From contig CDROCS010002834.1 of the NCBI GenBank assembly GCA_977020255.1, positions 434,001-498,000 of the forward strand: a DNA stretch of 64,000 nucleotides, in the 5' to 3' direction. Below the pieces are notes generated by a model. It worked only from the letters and a program-made list of their open reading frames with translations, was not told the DNA's origin and searched no databases. The stretch comes from Obrimoposthia wandeli (taxonomy: Eukaryota). The translations under genes were made by a program, and so were the position numbers. This document shows positions 3,600 to 29,383 of this stretch, in pieces (within the stretch, counting starts at the first letter, position 1; each line of letters begins with the position of its first letter).

Positions 3600-4571
3600 T
3601 TAATTTTTATCAAAAGGTAGCTTTTTAAAATTAGATATTTGCTCACCTATACTTTGATTTAATAGATGACCGTTTATTACTTTTTCATATTTATCAATAT
3701 ATGAAGCAGCCATAACATCAGCATTAAACTTGTCACGAGAGTATTCGTGGCAATGAATGGGATTAAAAGAATCAGCATTCGAAACAGCTGTCACAAGATC
3801 AGCCTCATCTGCAGATAGCACACCAACATCGCTCCCCACTAATTCAGGTAAAGAGCCATAAGGAGTACCGAATACTGGGCAACCAAAAAATAAGCTTTCG
3901 CTAATAGCCAAGCCAAAAGGCTCATGCCATGTTACAGGAAAAACTAAGCCTTTTGATTTACTCATTATTTCTGCTTTCGCGTTATCATCAACCATGCCCA
4001 TAAAATTGACATGACGGTCAAGTGTACACCGAAAGCCCATTTTAAAGTTTATTCTATTTCCACCTAGTACATCTAAAGGCACTTTCGCCTTTCGTGTAAT
4101 ATCGATAGCACCTTGAACATTTTTCACTCGCCATGCAGCTTTACCGAGAAAATGAAAGCGCTGCCTGTGAGCCTGTAGATCTGGCTGATGATAGTTATCC
4201 CAATTTAATCCGTTATAAACAAAACTTTCAGCACCATGGTTAATGGCATGCTGCTGTGAGACAAAAATCGTATTAGGGTTGATAACCCCATGTGAATTAC
4301 CATGTTGGGTTATAACATACGGCGTATCAATATCTTCAAGCTTCGAATGAAAATGAACAATATCAACATCCACTGGAATTTGAGAATCTAAAGACTGAGT
4401 AGGATTATATTCAATGACTCTCGCCCATTCACATTGTGTACCTTTACCCGCCAATAAAGTCACATTGTGATTTTGTAGATGCAAGCTATAAACAAGATCC
4501 CAAATAACACGCTCTGTTCCACCGTAATTTTTAACGGGTAATGTGGCATGAGTATAAATCAGAATATTCAT
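3600..4571 (-). CDS. Glycosyltransferase family 4 (GT-B)
   Basis: YGGTERVI N-terminal motif and EPFGLAISE (ExFGLxxxE) C-terminal motif. Confidence 0.85.
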
Positions 4572-5047
4572 CGAACGACCTTAGCTAATATCGCCTGATT
4601 AACGATCTCAGGCACAAACGTCGAGACATCACCACCATGGATTGCGACTTCCCGCACTAAGGTCGATGATAGAAATGCAAACTCTTCTGACGGTGTCAAA
4701 AATAAACTTTCTAAATTAGGGTTCAAGCGACGATACATCGTCGTAAGACCAAACTCATATTCAAAGTCCATCGTTGTACGCAGCCCTCGAACTAACACGG
4801 TTGCACTTTGCTCTGCAGCAAAATCAACCAACAGCCCAGTAAAACCTGCTATTTTCACATTATCCAAAGACTTACATGTCTTATTGAGCAACTCAACTCT
4901 TTCGTCAAGGCTGAATAATGTTTTTTTGCTGGGGCTAGATGCAACACCCACTATAACTTCATCAAAGATATCGGCTGCACGCCTTATCAAATCAAAATGA
5001 CCATTAGTCACAGGATCAAACGTGCCTGGGTATATCGCTTTTTTCAT
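4568..5047 (-). CDS. coaD: Phosphopantetheine adenylyltransferase
   Basis: [46 protein letters not shown]. Start placed at MKKAI; the ORF track extends it to 5062. Confidence 0.96.
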
Positions 5048-5058
5048 CGTATTATCCA

Positions 5059-6105
5059 TCAATTAGTATGCTGCGCTAAAACACGATCTAACATGTCAAT
5101 AACAGATTGGGTTCCGATCAGTGACATATGCCCTTTCCCCTTAATCCTTGTTCCCCATTTTAGCTCTTCTGCGGGTTTCCCGTATTGTTGCAGCACTAGC
5201 GATTCATAGACTGACACCACCCATGGCTGAGATAAATACGGCCCTGTTCGCTTCGGATTACTGTGGGCGTATAAACCAATAACAGGGGTATTTTGTGTCG
5301 TCGCTATGTGTGCAGGGCCGGAATCTGGAGCAATAACAACTTGTGCTTGGTTAATCAACGCGACTAGCTGTTTTAATGATGTTTGACCAATTAAGTTGAC
5401 CACATCGTGCTGGCAAAATTGCTCAATTTGCTTCCCTAATCGCTGTTCTCGTTCCGTCGGTGACCCACAAAGAACAACCTTTATCCCTTTGCGAACCGCA
5501 TGATCTGCGACAGCAGCATAGCGCTCCGGTAACCAATTACGTTCATCTTTGCTCGCAGCAGGACAAATAATTAAACTTGGAACTGAAATATATTGCTGAG
5601 CAAACGTAACATCAGCTTCTGTGACAGGGATAGTCCAAGACGGCACCGTAAAAGGCACACCGATAAACCGGACAAAATCAGCCAAGTTATCTAAAACATG
5701 ATACGAGATAGAATCTGGTAGCTTTCGATTAGTAAAAAGCCACTGGGCTTCTTTTGCCCGTCGCCAACTGTACCCAACACGGTACTTTGCTTTAATGCCT
5801 GCCGATAACAAACTCGCCCTTAAAGCTAACTGCATATGCAACAAAGCATCAAAACGTTGCCCAGATAGTCTAGACCAAACCTGACGCATCCCTTTCATAC
5901 CTTGAGACTTATCAAATACAATAACCTCAATACCAGGTAAGTCATGAATGAGCTGACTTTCAGTCTTACCGGTGATCCACGTGATTTTACATTGTGGCCA
6001 ATACTGCTGAATTTGCTGCACAACAGCAATGGTATGACACACATCTCCAATTGCAGACAAGCGCAGAATACAAATTGACGTCGGCGGAGCATCAAATAAC
6101 GACAT
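5059..6105 (-). CDS. Glycosyltransferase family 9, OpsX-like heptosyltransferase I
   Basis: [35 protein letters not shown]. This subtype acts on phosphorylated Kdo in Vibrio/Haemophilus. Confidence 0.82.
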
Positions 6106-6110
6106 TCACA

Positions 6111-7220
6111 TCACCTAAGTGGTATAAGTTCTTGAACGGCATCAACTAAGCGCTGTGCCGAAATATCTTGTAAGCAAGGTGAATAAAAATCATCACTGAT
6201 TTGGCACTTATTTTTATAACACGGCACACAACTACGTTCAGATTGCAGTACAGCAACATTATTGATGATTTGCTTCACGGGAATACGATTTTTATAAATA
6301 TTTTCAGTTTCATTAACGGGTAAATCATACGGCCATGGTGACCACATACTCGCCGGAGCGACACTAATGATCGAAACAATCGGGATCGGATAACCAGAAG
6401 CCATATGCCCCGGGCCGCTGTCTGGTCCGACAAACCCCATACTGTGTTTAATCAATGTAGAGGTTTGAGCCAACGATAATTCACCCGCAACATTAATCCA
6501 GTCTCCATCGAGCGTTTTGCTTATCTGAGCAACTATCTGCCGATCTCGATCGGAGTTAGCACCAGTTAAAACAATCCGATAACCAAGACTAAGCAGCTGA
6601 GTGATTGATTGCTGCCAATATTCGACAGGCCATTGCTTTATTTCATTCGAGGAAGGCGTATGAACAACAATATATTGTTTTGGCAGTTTATCTATAATGT
6701 GTATGGGTAAGTCCGCTTCTGGCGATACCACAATCGCTTTTTTAGGTATATCAAGTGGCTCCAGAATACGTAAATTTCGACTTAGCCTATGTTCATAATT
6801 ATCTTGCTCAAAGACATAATCGGTATATACCCACTTTTTAAACCATGCACTTTTTTCTTGTCGATCGACAATCCCCAAGCGCCTTTTACCAAAGACCCAG
6901 CTATAAATTGCGGTACGATCGGTTTGTCGATCGTTAACAACAACATCGTATGCACGGAAGTAGTGCTTAATTAACCTTAAGTAATCTTTTGGCTTTGGTT
7001 TTAATGAAATAGATATCAGATTACTGATGTCGGCATTGCCATTAAAAACCATTCGCCCACGATCAGTAACAAGCACATCTATTTCAGCTTGAGGGTAAGC
7101 ATTTCTTAAGCTTCTCGTTAGGCAAGTGGACAGCAGGCTGTCACCAATACAGTGAGTCGCGATGACTAAGATTTTTTGAACGTTTCTCGATGTTTTCATA
7201 ACGAAATGAGTTGGCAGCAA
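6111..7220 (-). CDS. Glycosyltransferase family 9 (WaaQ-like heptosyltransferase)
   Basis: KILVIATHCIGDSLL, KQWPVEYW, FVGPDSGPGHMA. Confidence 0.8.
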   Translation of the reverse strand: MLPTHFVMKTSRNVQKILVIATHCIGDSLLSTCLTRSLRNAYPQAEIDVLVTDRGRMVFNGNADISNLISISLKPKPKDYLRLIKHYFRAYDVVVNDRQTDRTAIYSWVFGKRRLGIVDRQEKSAWFKKWVYTDYVFEQDNYEHRLSRNLRILEPLDIPKKAIVVSPEADLPIHIIDKLPKQYIVVHTPSSNEIKQWPVEYWQQSITQLLSLGYRIVLTGANSDRDRQIVAQISKTLDGDWINVAGELSLAQTSTLIKHSMGFVGPDSGPGHMASGYPIPIVSIISVAPASMWSPWPYDLPVNETENIYKNRIPVKQIINNVAVLQSERSCVPCYKNKCQISDDFYSPCLQDISAQRLVDAVQELIPLR

Positions 7221-7274
7221 ATATGTATTACCTGTTAGTATGCCATAAATTCATTCGATCATTTATCTTATTCT

Positions 7275-7979
7275 ATGCTCTCTACCCTTCGCTCAAACAA
7301 TACGACCTATTGGTTTTTTGATGAATTACTGACAGAGGATGTTGATACCGCATTCAATATTGAGTATTGGCAACATCGAAACGCCATTTTAGGCTCGGCT
7401 CAGGGCCGTGGGACAACCTGGTTTTTACAAGGTAAAGTCATCGACATGGCACTTCGACACTATCATCGTGGTGGATTATTTGGAAAATTAGTCAGCGACC
7501 ATTACTTTTTCACAGGGTGGAAACGTACCCGTTCATACCAAGAACTCACCCTTCTAAATACGCTTATCCGAAATAATGTCAATGTACCCAAGCCCATTGC
7601 CGCAAAAGTAACCCGTAGAGGGCTAGTATATCAAGCTGATATATTAGTAGAAAAAATTGATGGCGCACAAGATCTAGTCGCATTACTAAAGCAGCAAAAA
7701 CTACCAGCATTCTTGTGGAAAAAAATTGGGCAGGAGATCCGTAAAATGCATAATGGTCAGGTTTGCCACACCGATTTGAATGCACATAATATACTGATAG
7801 ATCATAATGAAAAAGTATGGATTATTGATTTTGATAAGTGCTATCAGAAACGCAAAAATAACTGGAAAGACAATAATATTGAACGCTTGAAACGCTCATT
7901 TTGCAAAGAGGTTATAAAAGCTAACATCTATTGGGATCAAACAGATTGGCAATATTTGCTAGATGGCTACTCTCAATAA
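7275..7979 (+). CDS. kdkA: 3-deoxy-D-manno-octulosonic acid (Kdo) kinase
   Basis: GSAQGRGTTWF, LRHYHRGGLFGK, HTDLNAHNIL, WIIDFDK. Confidence 0.93.
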   Translation: MLSTLRSNNTTYWFFDELLTEDVDTAFNIEYWQHRNAILGSAQGRGTTWFLQGKVIDMALRHYHRGGLFGKLVSDHYFFTGWKRTRSYQELTLLNTLIRNNVNVPKPIAAKVTRRGLVYQADILVEKIDGAQDLVALLKQQKLPAFLWKKIGQEIRKMHNGQVCHTDLNAHNILIDHNEKVWIIDFDKCYQKRKNNWKDNNIERLKRSFCKEVIKANIYWDQTDWQYLLDGYSQ

Positions 7980-8034
7980 GAGCGGGCCGTTCTGTCAAAA
8001 CAACATTAGGCTTATTATCACCTTCAATATATTG

Positions 8035-8777
8035 CTAATATTTTTTTATATTCTCAAATAATTTCTTGTTTTTCTTCCTAAAATTACTCAGGATATGCAT
8101 CCTATAATTATCCTTAAACCAACTCCTAATGGCAGCTTTTACTCCTGCACATTCATTACTCAACTCACTTGCAAACAAGCCACTCTTACTGCCTTGTCGA
8201 ACTAATGGTGGGTGTACCCAGAAAATATTATATTGAATATCATCTCTTACGTTCCCAATCAGTCCATCGATAGGAGTATCAATAACGGTTTCCTCTATAT
8301 ATTTGACCATCTTTTTGGCAAAAGCTAGATCATAGATATATCCACCCAATTTATTTGTTTTGCATAAGTATAGGCTTTGTTCTTTTTTCTGACTGATATG
8401 GGAACTAAACTAGATGCTTCTTCAATATTAACAAAATAATTTGATTCACTCTTTAACTCAGACTGAATATTTTCTAAACATAAGCCGAAATCTGCATGAA
8501 GAAGGACATCATCTTCAAATATAAGGGCTTGCTGAATATTATCCTTTACCACCTTCTTCATGACTAAATAATGCTTATAGAAGCAAGATTTCTGTGCATC
8601 GGTTAACACATCGGAAAAAAACGATTGGTGGATATCATCCGACAGGTCATCGATATCACCTCGAAGCATGTACTCATATTCAGTGAGACCAATTTCGGGT
8701 AAATGCGTATCAATGTGGGCGCGGCGGTCTTCATACCCTTTGCTCACGTGGATAATATACGTTTTAATCATACTCAT
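8035..8777 (-). pseudogene. Glycosyltransferase family 25 (Lex2B/LgtB-like) split by a 1-bp frameshift in an A6 tract
   Basis: ORF 8325..8777 has TYIIHV..YEDRR, SCFYKH and LIFEDD (GT25). ORF 8035..8349 has GGYIYD, TPIDGL and QGSKSG. Adding one A to the run at 8383-8388 joins them (RKKEQSLYLCKTNKLGGY) into a 247-aa ORF. Confidence 0.8.
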
Positions 8778-20386: not shown

Positions 20387-21250
20387 ATGATTCATAGCAT
20401 GACCGCTTATGCTCGTCGCGAAGTTAAAGGCGATTGGGGCACTGCCGTTTGGGAAATTCGTTCAGTTAACCAACGCTACCTAGAAACCTACCTTCGTATG
20501 CCTGAGCAATTCCGTAGTTTAGAGCCTGTACTGCGTGAGCGTTTTCGTAAGCGCCTTGCTCGCGGTAAAGTTGAATGTAACCTGCGTTTTGAAGCAAACC
20601 AAGCAGCAAGCAGCGAACTCACCATCAATGAAGAATTAGCCAAGCAAGTCATTAAAGCCGCTAAGTGGGTAAAAGACACCGCTGGTGAAGGCAATATTGG
20701 TCCTTTTCAGGTATTGAACTGGCCGGGTGTAATGGAAGCCCCTGAGCAAGATCTCGATGCGATCAATAAAGATTTGTTGGTTGGTTTTGATGAGGCGATT
20801 ACTGACTTTATTGCCGCACGTGCAAGCGAAGGCGAAAACATGAAGGAATTGATTGTTCAACGCCTTGATGCCATTACTGTTGAAGCAACCAACGTACGCG
20901 CACAAATGCCTGACATTATTAAATGGCAACGTGAACGTCTAACCAGCCGCTTTGAAGATGCGAAAGTAGATCTGGATACAGGTCGTATTGAGCAAGAACT
21001 GATCATGATGGCACAAAAAAGTGATGTCGCTGAAGAGCTAGATCGCCTCGATTCGCATGTTAAAGAAACCCAAAAAATCATGAAGAAAGGAGGCGCATGT
21101 GGTCGTCGTCTTGATTTCATGATGCAAGAATTCAACCGCGAATCAAATACGCTAGCATCAAAATCAATCACGACTGAAATCACAGCATCTGCTGTTGAAT
21201 TAAAAGTATTGATTGAGCAAATGCGCGAGCAGATCCAAAATATCGAGTAA
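20387..21250 (+). CDS. yicC: YicC/YloC family endoribonuclease
   Basis: MIHSMTAYAR, EIRSVNQRYLE, EELDRL..H, GRRLDFMMQEFNRESNTLASK, EQMREQIQNIE. Confidence 0.96.
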   Translation: MIHSMTAYARREVKGDWGTAVWEIRSVNQRYLETYLRMPEQFRSLEPVLRERFRKRLARGKVECNLRFEANQAASSELTINEELAKQVIKAAKWVKDTAGEGNIGPFQVLNWPGVMEAPEQDLDAINKDLLVGFDEAITDFIAARASEGENMKELIVQRLDAITVEATNVRAQMPDIIKWQRERLTSRFEDAKVDLDTGRIEQELIMMAQKSDVAEELDRLDSHVKETQKIMKKGGACGRRLDFMMQEFNRESNTLASKSITTEITASAVELKVLIEQMREQIQNIE

Positions 21251-21280: not shown

Positions 21281-21325
21281 TATAACCTACCTTTAACCAT
21301 CTCATGGTAGTTAAAGGTAGGTATA
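21281..21325. terminator. Long hairpin between convergent yicC and the nuclease gene
   Basis: ACCTACCTTTAAC (21285-21297) / GTTAAAGGTAGGT (21310-21322), a perfect 13-bp inverted repeat with TATA at both outer ends. Confidence 0.55.
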
Positions 21326-21385
21326 GTAGACTTACTCAACCAGTGAGTGGTGGGTAAAATGATATTCGCCACTATCATTGTACGT

Positions 21386-23767
21386 TTACACGATACACTT
21401 TTCGTAAACAGAATCTAACTTATCAAAGTCAGTGATCCCTTGCATCAACGTCAAAGTTGTTAGCTTGAGTGATTGCCTGAATCCAGTGCAATTCATATTC
21501 ACTATTGGATGATTAAGCAATAACACCTTACCAAGTTCAAATAGCCAATATTGTTCTTCTTTTACCTGCGATTCTTTCGCACCCGACTGTGCAGGGGAAA
21601 TATAAGATCGCTCTCGCCGCAATACACTTTTGACACGATAAACCTTGGTTATTTCTAACGCGTCTGTACTAACATGTGCAATTGCAAGATAACTTACTTC
21701 TTGTGCTATGTGCTTACCAAACTGTGTATCAAAAACAAAAACGGGTATATGGAACCACTTGGCTTTACCTGCTTTAAAATTATCGATATAAGTTTGAGAG
21801 CGACTCTCACCTAGCCTTGCAGTAAGCACTAAATCTGGGTGTAACACTTGCTTCATGCCAGAGTATGGAATTCTAGCAGCTTCATTGACGTAAAGCGCAT
21901 CACTGATATAGGTATCAGAGTAAGTGCAAGACGGCAAGCCTAACTGCTCAAGCAAAAATGCCTCTAACCAACGGTTTTTATTATTTTCTGCACTGGGCAA
22001 AAGAGCAAAAGCGCCAATACCTACTTCATTGATAACAGCCTGATATGGATTGGAAGCTACAGACTGATCATAAAATCCCGGGTACAAAGCAAAAGCACCC
22101 AATACAGGCCTGCTCTTTGAGTGCAGTCCTTCTAGCCCTTCAATACGAATTAAAGCATCTCGATAACGGTGCATCTGATTAATGGCATCATCAGGAACAA
22201 AATCTTGTTGATCGATATTATCCAGTTCATAGCGATCACTTTTTGTTTTGATTCGGTACTTCGCATCAAATAACCAAATACATTTTTTACCATCAGGAAA
22301 GGTTACTTCCAACAAGATATCTGGTTTTTGGGTCACCCAAAATGAACGGATTTTTTTACCCGCTCTGCGGAAAACGGGCTCATGAGCTAATCTGGCTTTA
22401 AGTCCATCGGAACGCTCAAATACAAAAGCACCAGCGCCACTTAAACCATCTTCTAATTGCAACTCAAAATAGTCATTTAGTTTAAGTTTTGCTTTTTTTT
22501 GTTCTGTCTCTTTAAAGCCAAGTACATCTGTTAGCACCTTACGTACCGCTAAAAAGCACCACACTTCATAGGTTTCAGCGACGGATTTCATCGAAACGGT
22601 TGAGTGCTTTGCAAAGATATCTAAGTAGTACTTAAGCTCTTGCCATGTTTTATAAACCGTGTTGTAGCCAGTCTTTTGCTGAAGCACCAGAGATTCACGC
22701 TGCAAGCCAGTATAGTCGCCGACTTCTTTTAAAAAGCTGTGCCGTTCCATTTTAATTAGCGGCTTTTGCCAGTTTTTCAATTCGGAAAGAAAGTGCCGCG
22801 ATAAACGTGAGTGGGTGTTGTTCTCTTTCTTATTATTCACTTCAAGCTTGTCCGATAACGTTTCGAGCTCTTGCTTACATTGAATAACCACCATTTTGAT
22901 AAAGCGATTTTCCGGTGTATTCAGGCTTAAATATTTTTTATCTTGCTTATAGCGCCTGTCGTAAACTTTATTCGCAATATCCTCTCTAACCTTTTCTGCT
23001 AAGCGATTAGAAAGCCTACCTTTTAGTCGATCCGCTTTAATGTGGGAGGTTTTGCTTTGTAGGCGGTTATGCGGAGAGTTGGTAATAACTTTCAAGCCTT
23101 GATCTAAGCTTTCTCTTAATGTTTTAAATTGCGCCAACCACAATAAAGGAAAGTGGCCACGGTGCTGGCTCTTCGCTGCATTTTGTTCTGTTTTTTCCGC
23201 TAAGCTAAATCGCCACAATGGAAAGACGTCATCGATAGACCGGTACATAGCGGGCAAATCGCGATGTAGCTGCATTTTTGTCGGCAGCACTTCTAATGTC
23301 AGCTGTATCTTTTTTAATTCACCATCAACCAAGTAGCTTAGTGGTAAAGTCAATTGGCCAATGTCATTCCCAGTATTAATGGTACCTATGAGGCTGGCTG
23401 CACTATGCTTGCGCTTCGTCGTAAAACGAAAAGCACCTGAAATGCTTTGCAATGGATGCGCAATATCGGCTTGCTCAATGTCATCTTGCAAGAATACCCA
23501 CTCGAACTGATACGATGTATTTTCAAAGAATAAAGGCATTGGGAGCAGTATTTCTTCTAACGCCGAATCGCTAACCAAGTCACTAACCAGCCCTTGCAAG
23601 CTTACCTTTTCAGGGCTAATCGCGGGTTGAAATCGCAGCATATTGGAGACATGCTCAGACTCTCGACGCTTAAGCATATCAAAATAAGTACTTTGCCTAG
23701 CCTCTAAGTGTTGGCAGCTTACCGTCAACTCCCATTCAGGCGTTTCTATACAAATAAGCTCTTGCAC
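21386..23767 (-). CDS. McrC-like DUF2357 / PD-(D/E)XK nuclease with an extra C-terminal domain
   Basis: NTPENRFIK (DUF2357), GYNTVYK, AETYEVWCF, QKPDILLEV...LFDAKYR (PD-DxK), NQMHRYRDAL. GTG start with AGGAAG RBS 16 nt after the McrB-like stop. Confidence 0.85.
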   Translation of the reverse strand: MQELICIETPEWELTVSCQHLEARQSTYFDMLKRRESEHVSNMLRFQPAISPEKVSLQGLVSDLVSDSALEEILLPMPLFFENTSYQFEWVFLQDDIEQADIAHPLQSISGAFRFTTKRKHSAASLIGTINTGNDIGQLTLPLSYLVDGELKKIQLTLEVLPTKMQLHRDLPAMYRSIDDVFPLWRFSLAEKTEQNAAKSQHRGHFPLLWLAQFKTLRESLDQGLKVITNSPHNRLQSKTSHIKADRLKGRLSNRLAEKVREDIANKVYDRRYKQDKKYLSLNTPENRFIKMVVIQCKQELETLSDKLEVNNKKENNTHSRLSRHFLSELKNWQKPLIKMERHSFLKEVGDYTGLQRESLVLQQKTGYNTVYKTWQELKYYLDIFAKHSTVSMKSVAETYEVWCFLAVRKVLTDVLGFKETEQKKAKLKLNDYFELQLEDGLSGAGAFVFERSDGLKARLAHEPVFRRAGKKIRSFWVTQKPDILLEVTFPDGKKCIWLFDAKYRIKTKSDRYELDNIDQQDFVPDDAINQMHRYRDALIRIEGLEGLHSKSRPVLGAFALYPGFYDQSVASNPYQAVINEVGIGAFALLPSAENNKNRWLEAFLLEQLGLPSCTYSDTYISDALYVNEAARIPYSGMKQVLHPDLVLTARLGESRSQTYIDNFKAGKAKWFHIPVFVFDTQFGKHIAQEVSYLAIAHVSTDALEITKVYRVKSVLRRERSYISPAQSGAKESQVKEEQYWLFELGKVLLLNHPIVNMNCTGFRQSLKLTTLTLMQGITDFDKLDSVYEKCIV

Positions 23768-23782
23768 CCCTGCTTCCTTCTT

Positions 23783-25414
23783 TTATGGCCAAAAACTGGT
23801 AAAGCCATTCTTTAGCTGAGAATTCATCCAATCGAGCTTTGCTTTACTGCGACACTCTATCGTTAATACTGAGCCGTCTTTTGCTGATTTTTGGAATAAA
23901 TCAGGACGAACTTGTGTACCCCATATTTCAGCTAACAAAAGGTTCAGCAAACCACTAAGCTGCTCTAGTATATTTAGCTTAGAGCCCCCTTTGGTCAGTT
24001 TATCTATATCACCTTCGATGCGAGGTAACACTTTACACATCAAGAAATCATCCCATACCGCCTGCAACCCAATCACATCTTCAGGCTTCTGGATCATCAC
24101 CGTTAGCAGCAATTCATTTAAAGCTCGATAAGCAAGCTTAAACGGGGTGTTGTCTAAAATAGCGTTAACTTCGGTGAGAAAATCAATCGACAACGATCCA
24201 TCACTATCATGCGTATCGCTTAACTCTGCCTTGTTTCTTCCATCGGTAAAAACTGGGTAGCTTAAGGCTTTAGGCTCTGAATTTGGCTCGAAGAACGCAT
24301 TAAAATCATTAGGAAAGAACTCACCAAAATCAAACGTTAAAGCACGATCGATCACTTTTCGGGAAAAACCATGCGTGGTTTCATCCATGTTAACCGTACC
24401 CGCCACAATCAAATTAAACGGAATACCAATGCCATTTTCAAGAAAGTGTTGCCATAAATCATCACAACCATCTAAACCTAAATCGCTCTTAAGCTTTTCT
24501 TTATTATCAATATTTTCTAATAGGTTTGGCTTTAACAATGGATCGCATCGGTAACTAAAATTATTACCATCCCAACTCCACTGTCGTGTCTCTAGTACTG
24601 ATAAGTAATCGGCAAAGTATTGTTCGACTGGGGCAAGGTTCATTTCATCTAAGCAAAGCCAAAATGGTTTTACCTGTTGCTGCTGATTTTGTTCGCCCAC
24701 AGCCTCATTCGCTTGAAGTGTAACCCCAGCTTGCTTTAGCTCTATCCACGCTTTAACAATAAACTTAAGCACATCGGTAACGACATATTCAGCACGACCA
24801 CTTAGCCTTGACACATAGCCAAGCAGATCTGAAGACTCATGCCAGTCGGGACGAACAGAAGTCAGGCAGTAAGTTTCAGCAATTGAACCAGTTAGCTTAG
24901 CTTGCTCACGAATGAAGCGGGTTTTACCTGTACCGGAAATGCCAGCAAGGAGAATAAAAGGCTTGGGTAATAATTCATCAATAGCTTTATGTTTGTTTTG
25001 GATTACATATTGACTAAAAGAGTCAGTACTAATATCAAGGGTTTCCCCTACTTTGTGAACATCTTTTCCCAATAGTTGTAGAACTTTATATGTACTACTA
25101 TTTCTTCCAGATTTTCCTTTCATATACCCAACAGGAGGAAAATTGGCCAAAATGGTTTCGATAATACTTCTATCATTACCACCACCACTAAAGAAAGTAT
25201 CCACATGAACAGACGTTCCCTTTAAAAGTTCATCATAAATACTATCGAGCCGTGACCTAGTTATACTAACCTCGGTCCCAGCCCTAACCACTTTTATGGA
25301 TGTATCATCATAAGAAGTCACCCTTACGGTGTTCTTCCCTGATATATATTTAATATCTTTGTTTTTTAAGCTATTTAACCATCCTGTCACTAAATTCTGA
25401 GAACCCACGTCCAT
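23783..25414 (-). CDS. McrB-like AAA+ GTPase with an unrecognised N-terminal domain
   Basis: Walker A GISGTGKT, VRPDW, Walker B LCLDEMN, McrB signature GTVNMDETT (NxxD), FSRKVIDRA, KVLPRIEG. Confidence 0.9.
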   Translation of the reverse strand: MDVGSQNLVTGWLNSLKNKDIKYISGKNTVRVTSYDDTSIKVVRAGTEVSITRSRLDSIYDELLKGTSVHVDTFFSGGGNDRSIIETILANFPPVGYMKGKSGRNSSTYKVLQLLGKDVHKVGETLDISTDSFSQYVIQNKHKAIDELLPKPFILLAGISGTGKTRFIREQAKLTGSIAETYCLTSVRPDWHESSDLLGYVSRLSGRAEYVVTDVLKFIVKAWIELKQAGVTLQANEAVGEQNQQQQVKPFWLCLDEMNLAPVEQYFADYLSVLETRQWSWDGNNFSYRCDPLLKPNLLENIDNKEKLKSDLGLDGCDDLWQHFLENGIGIPFNLIVAGTVNMDETTHGFSRKVIDRALTFDFGEFFPNDFNAFFEPNSEPKALSYPVFTDGRNKAELSDTHDSDGSLSIDFLTEVNAILDNTPFKLAYRALNELLLTVMIQKPEDVIGLQAVWDDFLMCKVLPRIEGDIDKLTKGGSKLNILEQLSGLLNLLLAEIWGTQVRPDLFQKSAKDGSVLTIECRSKAKLDWMNSQLKNGFTSFWP

Positions 25415-25421
25415 TTATCAC

Positions 25422-26561
25422 CTATTCCATTGAATCTAAAAATGATTTTATTGTCTTAGCTACACCTTCTGCGGCTAAAAACGGTACTCCGTTTCCAATA
25501 GTTTTAAACATATTAGAAAGTGTCATGGTTGAAGGGAAGCAAAACTCCTTAGGTAAGGACTGAATAGCTAATGCCTCTGCCGCACTCAACCTGCGATCCT
25601 TATATGGGTGAAGATGTACTTCATTATTCCCATATGCAGCAGTAGGAGAGTACCTCCACCTATGTAGCCGTTTAAAAGACTTTTTACTGTCATCACCTTC
25701 TAGAATTGTCTGAAATTTAGGTAATGCTTGTCTGGGTATAAAGTGATGACTTGCATTCGGGTGAGAGTAAACGTCATTTTTCAAAAACCAGTTTTCAACA
25801 GTTAGTTGCTTAAAGGCTTCTAATGATTTAGGTAGTTCTTTAACTGAGTCTTGGAGGTAAATTTCATGTTTAGGCCACACCTCTTTATTTAACACCTCAT
25901 TTTTATCAAAAATGATAAAGGCATCCCATGCAAATTTGTTTGTTAATGAAGTGGTTGACATGCTTCCAACCTTTGAACGATGTACTCCAAATAACAAAAT
26001 GCGATCACGATCTTGAGGAACTCCATACTCAATACAATTAGTCAAACGATCCGTTAATATATAACCCGCATTCTCTAGGTTAGCTTTCATTTCCTCATAA
26101 AAAGCACGATGCTTTGTTGTCCTCCAAAGTCCTTTTACATTTTCAAATAAGAAAAAATCTGGTTCCTGTTTAATAATTGCTTCAACAAAGACCCGACTGA
26201 GCTTTCCATTCTCCCCCTCAGATCCTTTATTTTTTCCCGCGACAGAGAAGTCTGGACATGGTGGACCTCCTATAAACCCAACTAGAGACTGAGATTTTGC
26301 GTTTGCTACCAGCTCACTTAATAGTTCTTCCCCATCTCCGCTAGCAAAATCCTCTATGCTACCTAAATGGTGACCATAAGATGGTTCTGGTAGATCCATA
26401 ATTTTACGAGAGTACTTATAAGCATCTAAAAATGGTTTATGAAACTCATTTACAAAACGGACATCAAAGCCTGTTAGCTCAAAGCCTAAATCTAAAAAGC
26501 CGCTCCCCGAAAAAAAGGAGAATATTATTGGTGCCTTATTATTACTCAATCGTCTACCCAT
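25422..26561 (-). CDS. DNA (cytosine-5)-methyltransferase
   Basis: Motif I FFSGSGFLDLGF, catalytic GGPPCPDFS, ENVKG, QDRDR, RRLSAAE, motif X IGNGVP. Confidence 0.95.
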   Translation of the reverse strand: MGRRLSNNKAPIIFSFFSGSGFLDLGFELTGFDVRFVNEFHKPFLDAYKYSRKIMDLPEPSYGHHLGSIEDFASGDGEELLSELVANAKSQSLVGFIGGPPCPDFSVAGKNKGSEGENGKLSRVFVEAIIKQEPDFFLFENVKGLWRTTKHRAFYEEMKANLENAGYILTDRLTNCIEYGVPQDRDRILLFGVHRSKVGSMSTTSLTNKFAWDAFIIFDKNEVLNKEVWPKHEIYLQDSVKELPKSLEAFKQLTVENWFLKNDVYSHPNASHHFIPRQALPKFQTILEGDDSKKSFKRLHRWRYSPTAAYGNNEVHLHPYKDRRLSAAEALAIQSLPKEFCFPSTMTLSNMFKTIGNGVPFLAAEGVAKTIKSFLDSME

Positions 26562-26616
26562 CTTGCTAATTCAAAATACTGCAATATTCCTATTGATACC
26601 CATTATACCGTAGTTT

Positions 26617-26718
26617 CTATCGTTCTAATTCTTTTAATAACTGCTCTGCTATTGCCCAAGGTAACCGCCTACCTGCTGCTTTCATTTTCTCATAAGCCGT
26701 TCTAGCACTATTCAGTGC
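26617..26718 (-). pseudogene. Possible C-terminal relic of a PIN-like (DUF3368-type) protein
   Basis: Open frame ALNSARTAYEKMKAAGRRLPWAIAEQLLKELER* has no start codon and resembles, from memory, the tail of PIN/DUF3368 proteins in defence loci. Confidence 0.35.
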
Positions 26719-26749
26719 TCATTATTTGGTTACTGGCTTACCAACAAAC

Positions 26750-26995
26750 TCATGCACCAATAAATAACGATGTTGGTACTTCGAAGCGAGCAGAGAGCGC
26801 TTTCCACTTACTATCATTGATACCGTCGACTTTGCGCCAATTTCAGCGTTGAAATCACTTAAGGTCAATTTATGCAGATCGATGATGACTCGTACGTTTC
26901 AATAACCGGAAACATCAAATCAATAACAGGTTGATGTGCATCATAGTCTTCAATTAGCACTTCCATCGTATCTAAAGCTCTTGATATTCGCTCAT
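26750..26995 (-). pseudogene. Decayed HigA-type HTH antitoxin
   Basis: Three frames give RALDTMEVLIEDYDAHQPVIDLMFPVIETYE / IIDLHKLTLSDFNAEIGAKSTVSMIVSGKRSL / SARFEVPTSLFIGA*. These are colinear with HigA (Y..AL..E.L..., H.LTxSDF..EIGxKS.VS.I..G.RSL, RF..P...F), with deletions between the pieces. Confidence 0.72.
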
Positions 26996-27002
26996 GGTGC
27001 AC

Positions 27003-28010
27003 CTATTGGATCTTAATTTTGAATTGAAAAGTTTGTTTCAGCAATGTCTGCATCTCCGCCTTTCTCTGCACATGATCTTTGGCAAAAAATCGTTTTGGAT
27101 CAACCGTCACAAAGCCCCAAAACTGTAGAAATCGATCAATAAAGCGGGACTCAATCATAGAACCTAATAATTGACTGGGTGATGAGTACTCTTGTGCTGG
27201 GCAATTGAGTAATAAGTCAGGAAATGCCGTGGTCACTTCTTCAATCAATTGATCAACGCAGCCATGACTTTGTAAGCGCCAAAGCATAAAGAGCCAGAAG
27301 GTTCTTAGGTCAACATTCTGATCCCATCCATCTAGGTAGCCCCAATTGTACTGGCTGGTTGCCGCTTCAAGCATGGGGTTGAAAAAAGCCTGAATGCCGT
27401 GTGTTTGATACTGCTTTTGCGCAGATTTTTTCACATGATAACGACCACTACGACGATAAATGATGCCAGCAATCTCCGCCAGCACACGACTATAGTGGAG
27501 CGCATTAAACTTATCTTCGTTACTGCCTGCGTATTCACTGATACTAATATGTTGCTCAAATTTAGACACAGCAAATTCAGGCAATAATTCATTGGCCTGT
27601 TTAACCAGTTTAGTCGGTAAGTTACCTTTACTGGTGGCTTTAAACGAACCGCCATTCTGCATGGCTTCGTCCAAAATGAGCGCTAAATAACGCATTACAG
27701 GGCTAGTAGATAAATCATCTGGCGTGCTTATTGTGACCCAATCCAATTCATTGAATGACGCATACAACCAATTGGCCATTTGTGTTGGCGATAGACCACA
27801 AAAGTCAGGGTTGGGGCAATTATTACATTCATTCATTTTTTGTTCTGCAACGATATTGAGTTCATCTAAAGACAAGTTAGGATTCATCGCGGCAACCTGC
27901 TCAATATCATCCAGCATTGATGCGTGCTGTTTAGAAACGCTGTTCATACAACAACGTTTATATTTTTTACCACTGCCACACGGGCAAAGGTCATTACGGC
28001 CTGGTTTCAT
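27003..28010 (-). CDS. SEC-C (SWIM/SEC-C) metal-binding motif protein of unknown function
   Basis: N-terminal KPGRNDLCPCGSGKKYKRCC and NNCPNPDFCGLSPTQM. 335 aa, intact. Confidence 0.85.
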   Translation of the reverse strand: MKPGRNDLCPCGSGKKYKRCCMNSVSKQHASMLDDIEQVAAMNPNLSLDELNIVAEQKMNECNNCPNPDFCGLSPTQMANWLYASFNELDWVTISTPDDLSTSPVMRYLALILDEAMQNGGSFKATSKGNLPTKLVKQANELLPEFAVSKFEQHISISEYAGSNEDKFNALHYSRVLAEIAGIIYRRSGRYHVKKSAQKQYQTHGIQAFFNPMLEAATSQYNWGYLDGWDQNVDLRTFWLFMLWRLQSHGCVDQLIEEVTTAFPDLLLNCPAQEYSSPSQLLGSMIESRFIDRFLQFWGFVTVDPKRFFAKDHVQRKAEMQTLLKQTFQFKIKIQ

Positions 28011-28086
28011 AGTCAGTATCTCAAATTTATTTTTTACTAGCGCATCATGATATCTTTGATAAATACTTCTAATTTTGGTGTTTGAT

Positions 28087-28204
28087 TCATTGCCCTATCA
28101 GTACCGCATTTTCCTTTCTTCACTGCGTGAGTACTTGTTCAATCGCGGATAGGGTTGCATTACTGCGCATCTTCCCATGTTGAAAAACCAGCACTTGCAG
28201 CAAT
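28087..28204 (-). pseudogene. Relic C-terminal fragments of a HipA-like kinase toxin
   Basis: IAASAGFSTWEDAQ* then, in another frame, TLSAIEQVLTQ*RKENAVLIGQ*. From memory this matches the tail of Vibrio HipA-family proteins found behind XRE genes. Confidence 0.5.
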
Positions 28205-28225
28205 AACCCCCTACCATCAGGAAGG

Positions 28226-28366
28226 CTATCGCCAAAAGGTTGAGGCGGGCACACAGCTACGCTCGGCAAGCGCTTCACGCGACAGCTTCGCCTCTTTACG
28301 AAAACCACGTAAATAAGTAGCAAAAGCTTCGCTAACATCGGTATCATCTAAAAGTGAAAAGCGCAT
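28226..28366 (-). pseudogene. Truncated XRE-family HTH regulator/antitoxin (46 aa)
   Basis: MRFSLLDDTDVSEAFATYLRGFRKEAKLSREALAERSCVPAST is an XRE HTH, cut off just after helix 3 starts (FWR*). Confidence 0.72.
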
Positions 28367-28382
28367 ATAAAGCCACAAAAAA

Positions 28383-28440
28383 AGACACAGTAATGTCTAT
28401 TACAGCCCAAATTGTCGAGCTATGGACACAATAATGTCCA
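28383..28440. promoter_or_regulatory. Tandem palindromic operators upstream of the XRE relic
   Basis: AGACA-CAGTAA-TGTCT (28383-28398) and TGGACA-CAATAA-TGTCCA (28423-28440), with centres 41 bp apart. Confidence 0.6.
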
Positions 28441-28753
28441 AACATATAGAGTGAACACTAACCGGCCTAGCTAAAAACGTTGAAAACTGGTCTTTTGTCG
28501 TAGGCAACAGCACTTTGCTTCCGGTAACAGGCAGTAGCCATACTGCCTTTATAGGCCCACTTTCACACTTTCTTAGCATTAAAATTTAAAATACGAATAG
28601 TCTGAAATTAGCCATAAATCCATCTAGGCTTAAGCTGACGGCTTATAAAGTCGCATTAACCGTATAAAAGATGAAATTTCCAGCAATCAGATAATTTCAA
28701 TTTTGCGCAATTCGTGATAATCTGCGCGCCCTTCTAGCACTGAGTGAAAATAG

Positions 28754-29383
<630 letters not shown>

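Follow-up and report, generated by a model that had tools for sequence, protein, structure and literature searches.

The 64,000-nucleotide stretch analysed here, referred to as the window, is taken from contig CDROCS010002834.1 (C2834:434001-498000) of the Obrimoposthia wandeli assembly GCA_977020255.1. It contains an operon coding for a C5-cytosine DNA methyltransferase (MTase), an AAA+ motor protein of the McrB kind and a long McrC-like nuclease. We propose that this operon likely constitutes a three-gene restriction-modification (R-M) system on a McrBC-type chassis, in which the MTase and the N-terminal reader domain of the motor protein form an exchangeable specificity cassette with a predicted activity at RCCGGY. 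A preliminary description, made from the letters alone, had already suggested that a McrBC-like motor nuclease is paired here with a protective C5-MTase and attacks unmethylated DNA. The comparative evidence fits this suggestion. Restriction of unmethylated DNA has direct experimental precedent, because the PcaRCI system of Pectobacterium carotovorum shares both its architecture and its protein family with the window operon, and by this analogy the predicted restriction of unmethylated DNA by the operon is well supported. That its operation would be GTP-driven, as had been suggested as well, we infer by analogy.

A three-gene operon with all catalytic motifs

The operon consists of three intact open reading frames (ORFs) on the minus strand, located between yicC and gmk. 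These are the C5-MTase gene (25422-26561; 379 amino acids (aa), ATG start), the AAA+ motor gene (23783-25414; 543 aa, ATG start) and the McrC-like nuclease gene (21386-23767; 793 aa, GTG start). The MTase and motor genes are separated by 7 nucleotides (nt; 25415-25421) and the motor and nuclease genes by 15 nt (23768-23782), exactly as first described, and the catalytic motifs of MTase, motor and nuclease that had been reported could all be read in the translations. The guanine-cytosine (GC) content of the operon is around 0.37-0.42, compared with 0.44-0.50 in the flanks.

The MTase gene and the reader are exchanged as one block

Two contigs from other samples, L084 and L085, share the synteny of the window (recG-trmH-spoT-rpoZ-gmk ... 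yicC-rph-pyrE-slmA-dut). In blastn alignments their DNA is around 95% identical across the flank, with rph and yicC, the whole nuclease gene and the motor, and the homology breaks off at 24969/24970. This position corresponds to codon 148/149, the junction between reader and motor, just ahead of the first AAA+ strand. Homology is back at 26600/26629-26796, is lost over a 1.7-kb insertion and finally returns at 28519. Between the two junctions, L084 encodes a DUF3578 reader and no MTase, and L085 a Dcm-like MTase of 414 aa together with a larger reader of another type (N5, see below). The region upstream of the replaced segment, which forms the leader or promoter region of the operon (26632..26796, minus strand), is conserved at 89-90% of nucleotides between the alleles. 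Because near-identical contigs swap the MTase gene and the reader segment at the same joints, we regard the two as one exchangeable cassette (24970..26631, minus strand), which has recently been exchanged.

The same joints are found in public contigs covering 21300-26900, namely in runs X2, X4 and X5 and in a minor contig of run X1, where 1646-1740 letters are replaced by 668-759 different ones. Run X1 holds 98% of the words of the stretch and is its probable source sample. Here, the depth is 7.1 for the window cassette, 11.2 for the short, DUF3578-type joint and 18.9 for the chassis, so that cassette and alternative joint together amount to about the depth of the chassis. Contig depths are coarse, and these values are suggestive only of two strains or alleles that co-exist in the sample. 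A 'combined type II/type IV system', which had been offered as one option for the operon, is not supported, as the Type IV state (DUF3578 reader, MTase absent) corresponds to an allele of its own at this locus.

Reader type follows the MTase clade

We fetched 80 genomic loci with homologues, called their ORFs and clustered the N-terminal domains of the motor proteins and the neighbouring C5-MTases; the counts below add the window and the Pectobacterium loci L081 and L082. Across these homologues the motor is 50-93% identical, and the N-terminal domains are unrelated. The N1 type, MrcB_N/DUF3578 (Pfam E 6e-54), occurs in 24 loci. None of them (0/24) has an adjacent C5-MTase, and tblastn found none within 9 kb. 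The reader type of the window, N2, is present in 16 loci, and all 16 carry an orthologous MTase at 55-81% identity, one of them cut by a contig end. A C5-MTase likewise accompanies N3 in 9 of 10 loci (the exception has an integrase upstream in its place), N4 in 8 of 9 (the exception is a truncated contig), N5 in 7/7, and N6 and N7 in 3/3 each, as well as the single loci of N10, N11 and N12. Counted over the 80 loci and the window, types N3-N7 and N10-N12 together have a C5-MTase in 34 of 36. No C5-MTase was recognised beside N8, N9 and N13 (2, 1 and 1 loci). Overall, the layout of an MTase, an AAA+ protein with its own reader and a long DUF2357 nuclease was found in 50 of the loci compared.

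Mapping reader type on the motor tree required 49 changes compared with a shuffled mean of 51.5, meaning that the types are scattered like random labels. On the MTase tree only 11 changes were needed, where the minimum is 9 and the shuffled mean 32.3, and none of 200 shuffles reached a value as low. Among 10 phylogenetically independent pairs contrasting in DUF3578, the presence of an MTase changed in the opposite sense in a mean of 9.6 and in the same sense in none (median p 0.002). It is the MTase clade that reader type follows, and not the phylogeny of the motor. At one locus, L048 of Cysteiniphilum marinum (6244-8510), two different C5-MTase genes lie in tandem upstream of the motor. It is the sole relative with two MTases, recalling the two-MTase layout of LlaJI and BsuMI.

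These data bear on a different explanation, in which the operon is a methylation-dependent Type IV McrBC that adjoins an independent, regulatory orphan MTase of the VchM kind, with a nuclease that targets other modified DNA. Canonical McrBC is a Type IV system, VchM of Vibrio cholerae has been described as an orphan MTase with regulatory roles (PMC4654547), and a domain resembling the reader of the window is fused to GmrSD_N elsewhere. We nevertheless consider this explanation very unlikely, given that MTase and reader are inherited and replaced as a single block, that reader type tracks the MTase clade, that the true Type IV reader DUF3578 stands without an MTase in 24/24 loci, and that the gap between the MTase and motor genes measures 7 nt. 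In addition, PcaRCI, a member of the same family, attacks unmethylated DNA (PMC8989522). Type IV systems combine a modified-base reader with the lack of a cognate MTase; the reader of the window has no PF12102 match and the MTase gene is located directly upstream of the motor gene.

The MTase and its predicted recognition site

The MTase matches PF00145 DNA_methylase in Pfam (E 5e-47) as well as TIGR00675, and its translation contains the motifs GGPPCPDFS, with the catalytic Cys102, ENVKG and YSPTAAYGNNEVHLHP. Over its full length, including the variable region, it shares 69% identity and 85% similarity with P0402, a C5-MTase of V. cholerae O1 El Tor. The P0402 cluster is present on >1000 V. 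cholerae contigs, O1 El Tor strains included. V. cholerae N16961 is reported to encode four MTases, of which VchM alone is described as a 5-methylcytosine (m5C) MTase, methylating RCCGGY (PMC4654547). The distribution of the P0402 cluster suggests that it is VchM. Moreover, homologues with 75% and 64% identity to the window MTase carry the source name 'modification methylase NmeDIP', and the MTase that adjoins an NmeDI_C endonuclease in locus L088 is 60% identical. The preliminary description had tentatively placed the MTase in a group of RCCGGY enzymes, and these identities and names support that placement as far as NmeDI and VchM are concerned. By comparison, its identity to E. coli Dcm is low, at about 27% over the N-terminal half (~200 residues). 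The Dcm-like MTase clusters of the related loci reach 36-43% identity to Dcm over the full length, and the MTase tree separates the clade of the window from them with 100% support.

R.NmeDI of Neisseria meningitidis, a protein of 351 aa, has RCCGGY as its recognition sequence; it requires two sites and cleaves at 12/7 on either side (PMC2095814). A separate recognition domain fits an enzyme that cuts on both sides at a distance and requires two sites, and RCCGGY is therefore the site that we predict. For the MTase, the predicted product would be m5C at RCCGGY, most likely at the outer cytosine. We place moderate confidence in RCCGGY as the putative recognition site of the system as a whole. 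The links to NmeDI, VchM and PcaRCI are drawn from Pfam names, source names, reported identities and distribution, as opposed to direct alignment with R.NmeDI, M.NmeDI, VCA0198 or the PcaRCI proteins.

The R-M logic could be right and the site a different one, such as a subset, superset or neighbour of RCCGGY (RCCGGB, CCGG or another sequence). RCCGGY could be wrong because an MTase identity of 69% and a remote reader homology, at only 23-28% identity to NmeDI_C proteins, do not fix specificity. In line with this alternative, M.NmeDI is reported as RCCGGB while R.NmeDI reads RCCGGY (PMC2095814). The frequency of the site is weak evidence: RCCGGY occurs 25 times in the window compared with 41 +/- 6.8 expected, a shortfall that is a weak hint. 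Yet the similarity to the V. cholerae MTase extends over the full length and through the variable region, the MTase of an NmeDI-type pair is 60% identical, and the MTase clade is coupled to the reader of the window in 16/16 loci and also stands beside three other effector types. Considering both sides, we regard a site other than RCCGGY as unlikely.

A reader domain shared with NmeDI-type endonucleases

The N2 reader comprises residues 1-148 of the motor protein (24970..25414, minus strand) and shares homology with the N-terminal region of Type II endonucleases of the NmeDI type. It matches no Pfam family, PF12102 (DUF3578) included. The PADLOC REase_II model PDLC03534 matches its residues 6-99; this model has 351 positions, the same length as R.NmeDI. 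Searching by words with residues 1-145 returned three close relatives only. A profile built from 36 N2 readers and run against 1.84 billion representatives yielded 215 cluster representatives, including proteins of 354-358 aa with the Pfam family NmeDI_C in their C-terminal part. Aligning the reader with two NmeDI_C proteins by hhalign gave probabilities of 97.5% and 95.4% over the N-terminal ~120 residues, with an identity of 23-28%. Other AAA_5 proteins and a 647-aa GmrSD_N protein are also among the profile matches. The reader had been announced as a new recognition module. Given its homology to the N-terminal part of NmeDI-type endonucleases it is not wholly new. A literature search, incomplete in coverage, for a link between McrB-like proteins and NmeDI or for cassette exchange found no paper.

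Reader-like domains on three other effector types also occur beside an MTase of the window type. In L088 (353-4619) and L089 (231-4665), a C5-MTase ~59-60% identical to that of the window is accompanied by a 358-aa NmeDI_C endonuclease, a 647-aa GmrSD_N protein and an AAA_15/21 ATPase. The cluster in L087 begins with a C5-MTase fragment 60% identical to the window MTase and includes an 844-aa HATPase_c protein and a 576-aa Mrr_cat-helicase fusion; at 4563-5714 it encodes two proteins of 137 and 237 aa, both with a reader-like domain. A substantial part of the 215 profile matches consists of a ~237-aa family that has no Pfam entry.

An AlphaFold2 (AF2) model of the reader reached a predicted local distance difference test score (pLDDT) of 88.6. 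Partial matches to Sm/SH3-like folds (~residues 4-60) and winged-helix-like folds (~50-118) fall below the background level of VIA-align, and we claim no fold on their basis. The most conserved positions of the reader (H70, D72, N80, R82, E86, G96, R104, N105, K110 and H120) were assigned to the ~50-118 half, and this half, with its conserved positions and its weak winged-helix-like match, may serve as a lead.

The motor and nuclease subunits

The motor domain of the McrB family spans residues 149-543 (23783..24969, minus strand). Its translation contains Walker A (GISGTGKT, 158-165), Walker B (LDEMN, 255-259) and VNMDETTHGFSRKVIDR (341-357). Pfam gives a sub-threshold match to AAA_5 (21.1 bits, with a cut-off of 22), and NCBI names the homologues 'McrB family protein'. 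The AF2 model of residues 146-543 has a pLDDT of 90.3 and a predicted template modelling score of 0.91, and the ten best Foldseek matches to this model are all McrB chains of Thermococcus gammatolerans (E 1.4e-6 to 3.3e-5). VIA-align superposed the motor on T. gammatolerans McrB with a Z of 14.0 (173 aligned residues), on E. coli McrB with 13.6 (166 residues), on a model of B. subtilis YdiS, a BsuMI subunit, with 13.0 (173 residues) and on NorQ of the MoxR family with 12.5 (159 residues). After sensor 1 the motor carries the signature V-N342-M-D344-E, and hhalign, at a low overall probability, pairs N342 with the N of the NTAD of McrB. An NxD signature variant defines a large McrB branch in a 2024 census of McrBC systems (PMC11090510), and the N-M-D of the motor looks like this variant. 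The label 'McrB-like' used in the preliminary description is thus upheld by fold, in Foldseek and VIA-align, and not by sequence search against solved structures. Taking the modelled fold matches together with the DUF2357/PD-(D/E)xK partner, we accept the motor as a probable member of the McrBC family.

The nuclease (21386..23767, minus strand) is composed of an N-extension (residues 1-126), a DUF2357 domain (127-375; 22643-23389), a PD-(D/E)xK domain (398-566; 22070-22576) and a C-extension (600-793). In Pfam the two domains correspond to PF09823 DUF2357 (E 2e-77) and PF04411 PDDEXK_7 (E 2.5e-49), and the catalytic residues are P482-D483 and D501-A502-K503. The protein is 50% identical to its Pectobacterium homologue over the full length, and the GTG start matches the N-terminus of that homologue. 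Searching solved structures with the single sequence and with a profile gave no match, and an Atlas look-up of the C-extension, with scores of 0.83-0.84, returned no informative match.

Points that weigh against an R-M system

Several results speak against the reading proposed here. Regarding the site, the equation of the P0402 cluster with VchM is drawn from its distribution and not from a named record, and we count the catalytic Cys of P0402 at residue 108, compared with C109 in the VchM paper. As for the reader, a similar domain is fused to GmrSD_N in the 647-aa protein of L088 and L089, adjoining the MTase-endonuclease pair. The GmrSD_N family is usually tied to modified DNA. In these loci the protein would be a second nuclease with the same reader and MTase. 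An NmeDI_C homologue in L090, moreover, adjoins an N6/N4-type MTase and not a C5-MTase. The reader model found no solved match in Foldseek at E <= 0.001, and its best Z in VIA-align was 5.5. Because the reader has no significant solved fold relative, its sensitivity to methylation is not arguable from structure.

For the motor, searches against solved structures by single sequence and by profile gave no match, and hhalign of the motor profile with E. coli McrB returned a probability of 12.7%, with a sensible alignment of Walker B and the sensor region. The margin over MoxR/NorQ ATPases is small, amounting to 1.5 Z. Finally, none of the RNA runs checked for the window stretch holds it, and the minus strand of the leader showed no strong sigma-70 consensus.

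The last two results also bear on the idea that the operon is a silent or decaying remnant without a current defence function in this strain. No RNA evidence and no strong promoter match were found; a promoter scan returned fewer sites than in shuffles and none that is convincing within the leader. In addition, the locus is polymorphic and carries an extra 1.7-kb insertion upstream of the leader. Against this idea, three full-length ORFs have kept every catalytic motif, the proteins can be aligned with homologues along their entire length at 50-81% identity, and the leader is conserved between alleles. We therefore judge a remnant to be extremely unlikely.

Genomic setting of the operon

The assembly measures 1.35 Gb in 6912 contigs, and the window is therefore best understood as part of a bacterial contig within a far larger, probably host or mixed, assembly. 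Among the fetched loci, homologues of its housekeeping proteins from Vibrio or Shewanella are at most ~77-79% identical. PF00145 matches were found at 21 places on many contigs of the assembly. The vsr family (PF03852) was not matched anywhere in the whole assembly, the vicinity of the operon included, in agreement with the earlier remark that no vsr gene is adjacent; with 1.35 Gb in 6912 contigs as its own genome, arguments from genome-wide absence or site avoidance are weak.

The flanks of the operon are conserved. On one side, yicC (20387..21250, plus strand; identified by Pfam) is convergent with the nuclease gene, and rph lies on this side too. On the other side, a gene with a SEC-C motif is followed by gmk (28757..29383, plus strand; Pfam), the conserved flank opposite yicC, which keeps its synteny in L084 and L085. 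Of the 80 related loci, 25, belonging to many gammaproteobacterial genera, have yicC within a few kb downstream of the nuclease gene, often followed by rph. It holds the same place in L081, L082, L084 and L085. The Pectobacterium loci L081 and L082 also have HipA, PIN/Phd, Fic and AbiEii genes in the same island. The yicC-gmk interval looks like a recurrent home of the motor-nuclease chassis and resembles a defence-island hotspot.

Within the leader, a perfect 16-bp palindrome (26704-26719, 6-bp arms and a 4-nt centre) lies in the region conserved among the three cassette alleles and might act as an operator or as the terminator of the upstream gene. The strain-specific insertion (26797..28518, minus strand) separates the leader from gmk and is missing in L084 and L085. 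It contains a gene for a 335-aa protein (27003-28010, minus strand) and a 75-aa ORF (28120-28347). The sole recognisable feature of the 335-aa protein in Pfam is an N-terminal SEC-C motif. The insertion may be a separate accessory or defence gene, with no shown membership in the system of the operon.

Proposed mode of action and cassette switching

In the proposed mechanism, the C5-MTase would methylate the sites of the host itself, most likely at the outer cytosine of RCCGGY, and the 148-residue N-terminal domain of the AAA+ subunit would read the same site in its unmethylated state. By analogy with McrBC, the AAA+ domains would form rings that hydrolyse nucleoside triphosphates and hold the DUF2357 part of the nuclease subunit. 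These rings would pull in DNA, and the PD-(D/E)xK domain would cut unmethylated foreign DNA, with more than one site probably needed. Relatives carry other MTase-reader pairs on the same chassis or, corresponding to the Type IV mode, a DUF3578 methylcytosine reader without an MTase.

A broader model appears plausible to us, and rather more likely than its opposite. Here, a constant motor and nuclease reside at the yicC-gmk position of a marine gammaproteobacterium and its relatives, and a single recombination, using the joints in the leader and in the reader-motor linker, swaps the MTase and reader cassette. Each swap would change specificity and switch the locus between a methylation-blocked R-M mode and a methylation-dependent Type IV mode with DUF3578; the probable source sample seems to contain both alleles. 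In the same model, the reader is an unannotated RCCGGY-reading domain common to NmeDI-type Type II enzymes, McrB-like motors, a GmrSD-type protein and the ~237-aa family.

RCCGGY is a concrete, testable site prediction for a specificity class that is uncharacterised and common among Vibrionaceae and further marine Gammaproteobacteria. The window, L084 and L085 represent a natural isogenic series that differs only in the MTase-reader cassette and lends itself to asking how a McrBC chassis can be redirected from methylated to unmethylated DNA. The reader, defined by its sequence and lacking a Pfam family, connects Type II enzymes of the NmeDI type with motor-driven nucleases. The "orphan" VchM of V. 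cholerae belongs to a clade that elsewhere forms the protective half of restriction systems.

Comparison with known systems

The closest precedent is PcaRCI of P. carotovorum RC5297, consisting of M.PcaRCI, R.PcaRCIA and R.PcaRCIB (Birkholz et al., NAR 2022; PMC8989522). Its C5-MTase methylates CCNGG and is reported to be 38% identical to Dcm, and PcaRCIA is an AAA+ protein that matches McrB only C-terminally. Deleting both nuclease genes abolished the restriction of unmethylated plasmids and of phage ZF40, and the MTase was protective in trans (PMC8989522). Both systems consist of a C5-MTase, an AAA+ protein and a long DUF2357 protein with N- and C-extensions of the same protein family, and both lie in a low-GC variable region. 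However, M.PcaRCI is Dcm-like and specific for CCNGG, whereas the window MTase falls into a separate clade and the reader is of another domain type. We infer that PcaRCI belongs among the Dcm-like clusters N3-N5. P. carotovorum also harbours an N2-type locus, L081, whose three proteins are 58/55/50% identical to those of the window and which likewise lies beside yicC. L081 was considered as PcaRCI itself and rejected, as its MTase is far from Dcm while M.PcaRCI is reported to be 38% identical to it.

With NmeDI the window shares the MTase clade and a reader homologous to the N-terminal ~140 residues of NmeDI_C endonucleases. Unlike NmeDI, the window operon has no NmeDI_C domain (PF27126 is absent from all three proteins); its reader is fused to an AAA+ motor, its McrC-like nuclease is a separate protein, and it lacks vsr. 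Over its entire length the MTase is 69% identical and 85% similar to the V. cholerae C5-MTase cluster. Whereas VchM is described as an orphan with regulatory roles, the window MTase gene opens a restriction operon.

Comparing the operon with McrBC of E. coli and Thermococcus reveals a common AAA+ fold (Z 13.6-14.0) and a DUF2357 and PD-(D/E)xK partner, and the DUF3578 reader of E. coli McrB is present in near-identical relatives of the window locus (L084). The window differs by another reader and a cognate MTase, by N-M-D in place of N-T-A-D, and by a McrC homologue of 793 aa with two extra regions. LlaJI of Lactococcus and BsuMI of B. subtilis (YdiR/YdiS/YdjA) likewise pair McrBC-like motors with protective C5-MTases. 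The reader of LlaJI.R1 is reported to be a B3-like domain. Both systems have two MTases each, and BsuMI three restriction subunits, compared with a single MTase gene and two restriction genes in the window operon.

McrBC branches associated with an MTase were flagged in the 2024 census, to which a follow-up was announced (PMC11090510). Because PcaRCI, LlaJI and BsuMI are characterised and such branches have been flagged, the window operon opens no new category, and the kind of system is already known. What it adds is the cassette structure, the natural allelic series and the concrete prediction of a site.

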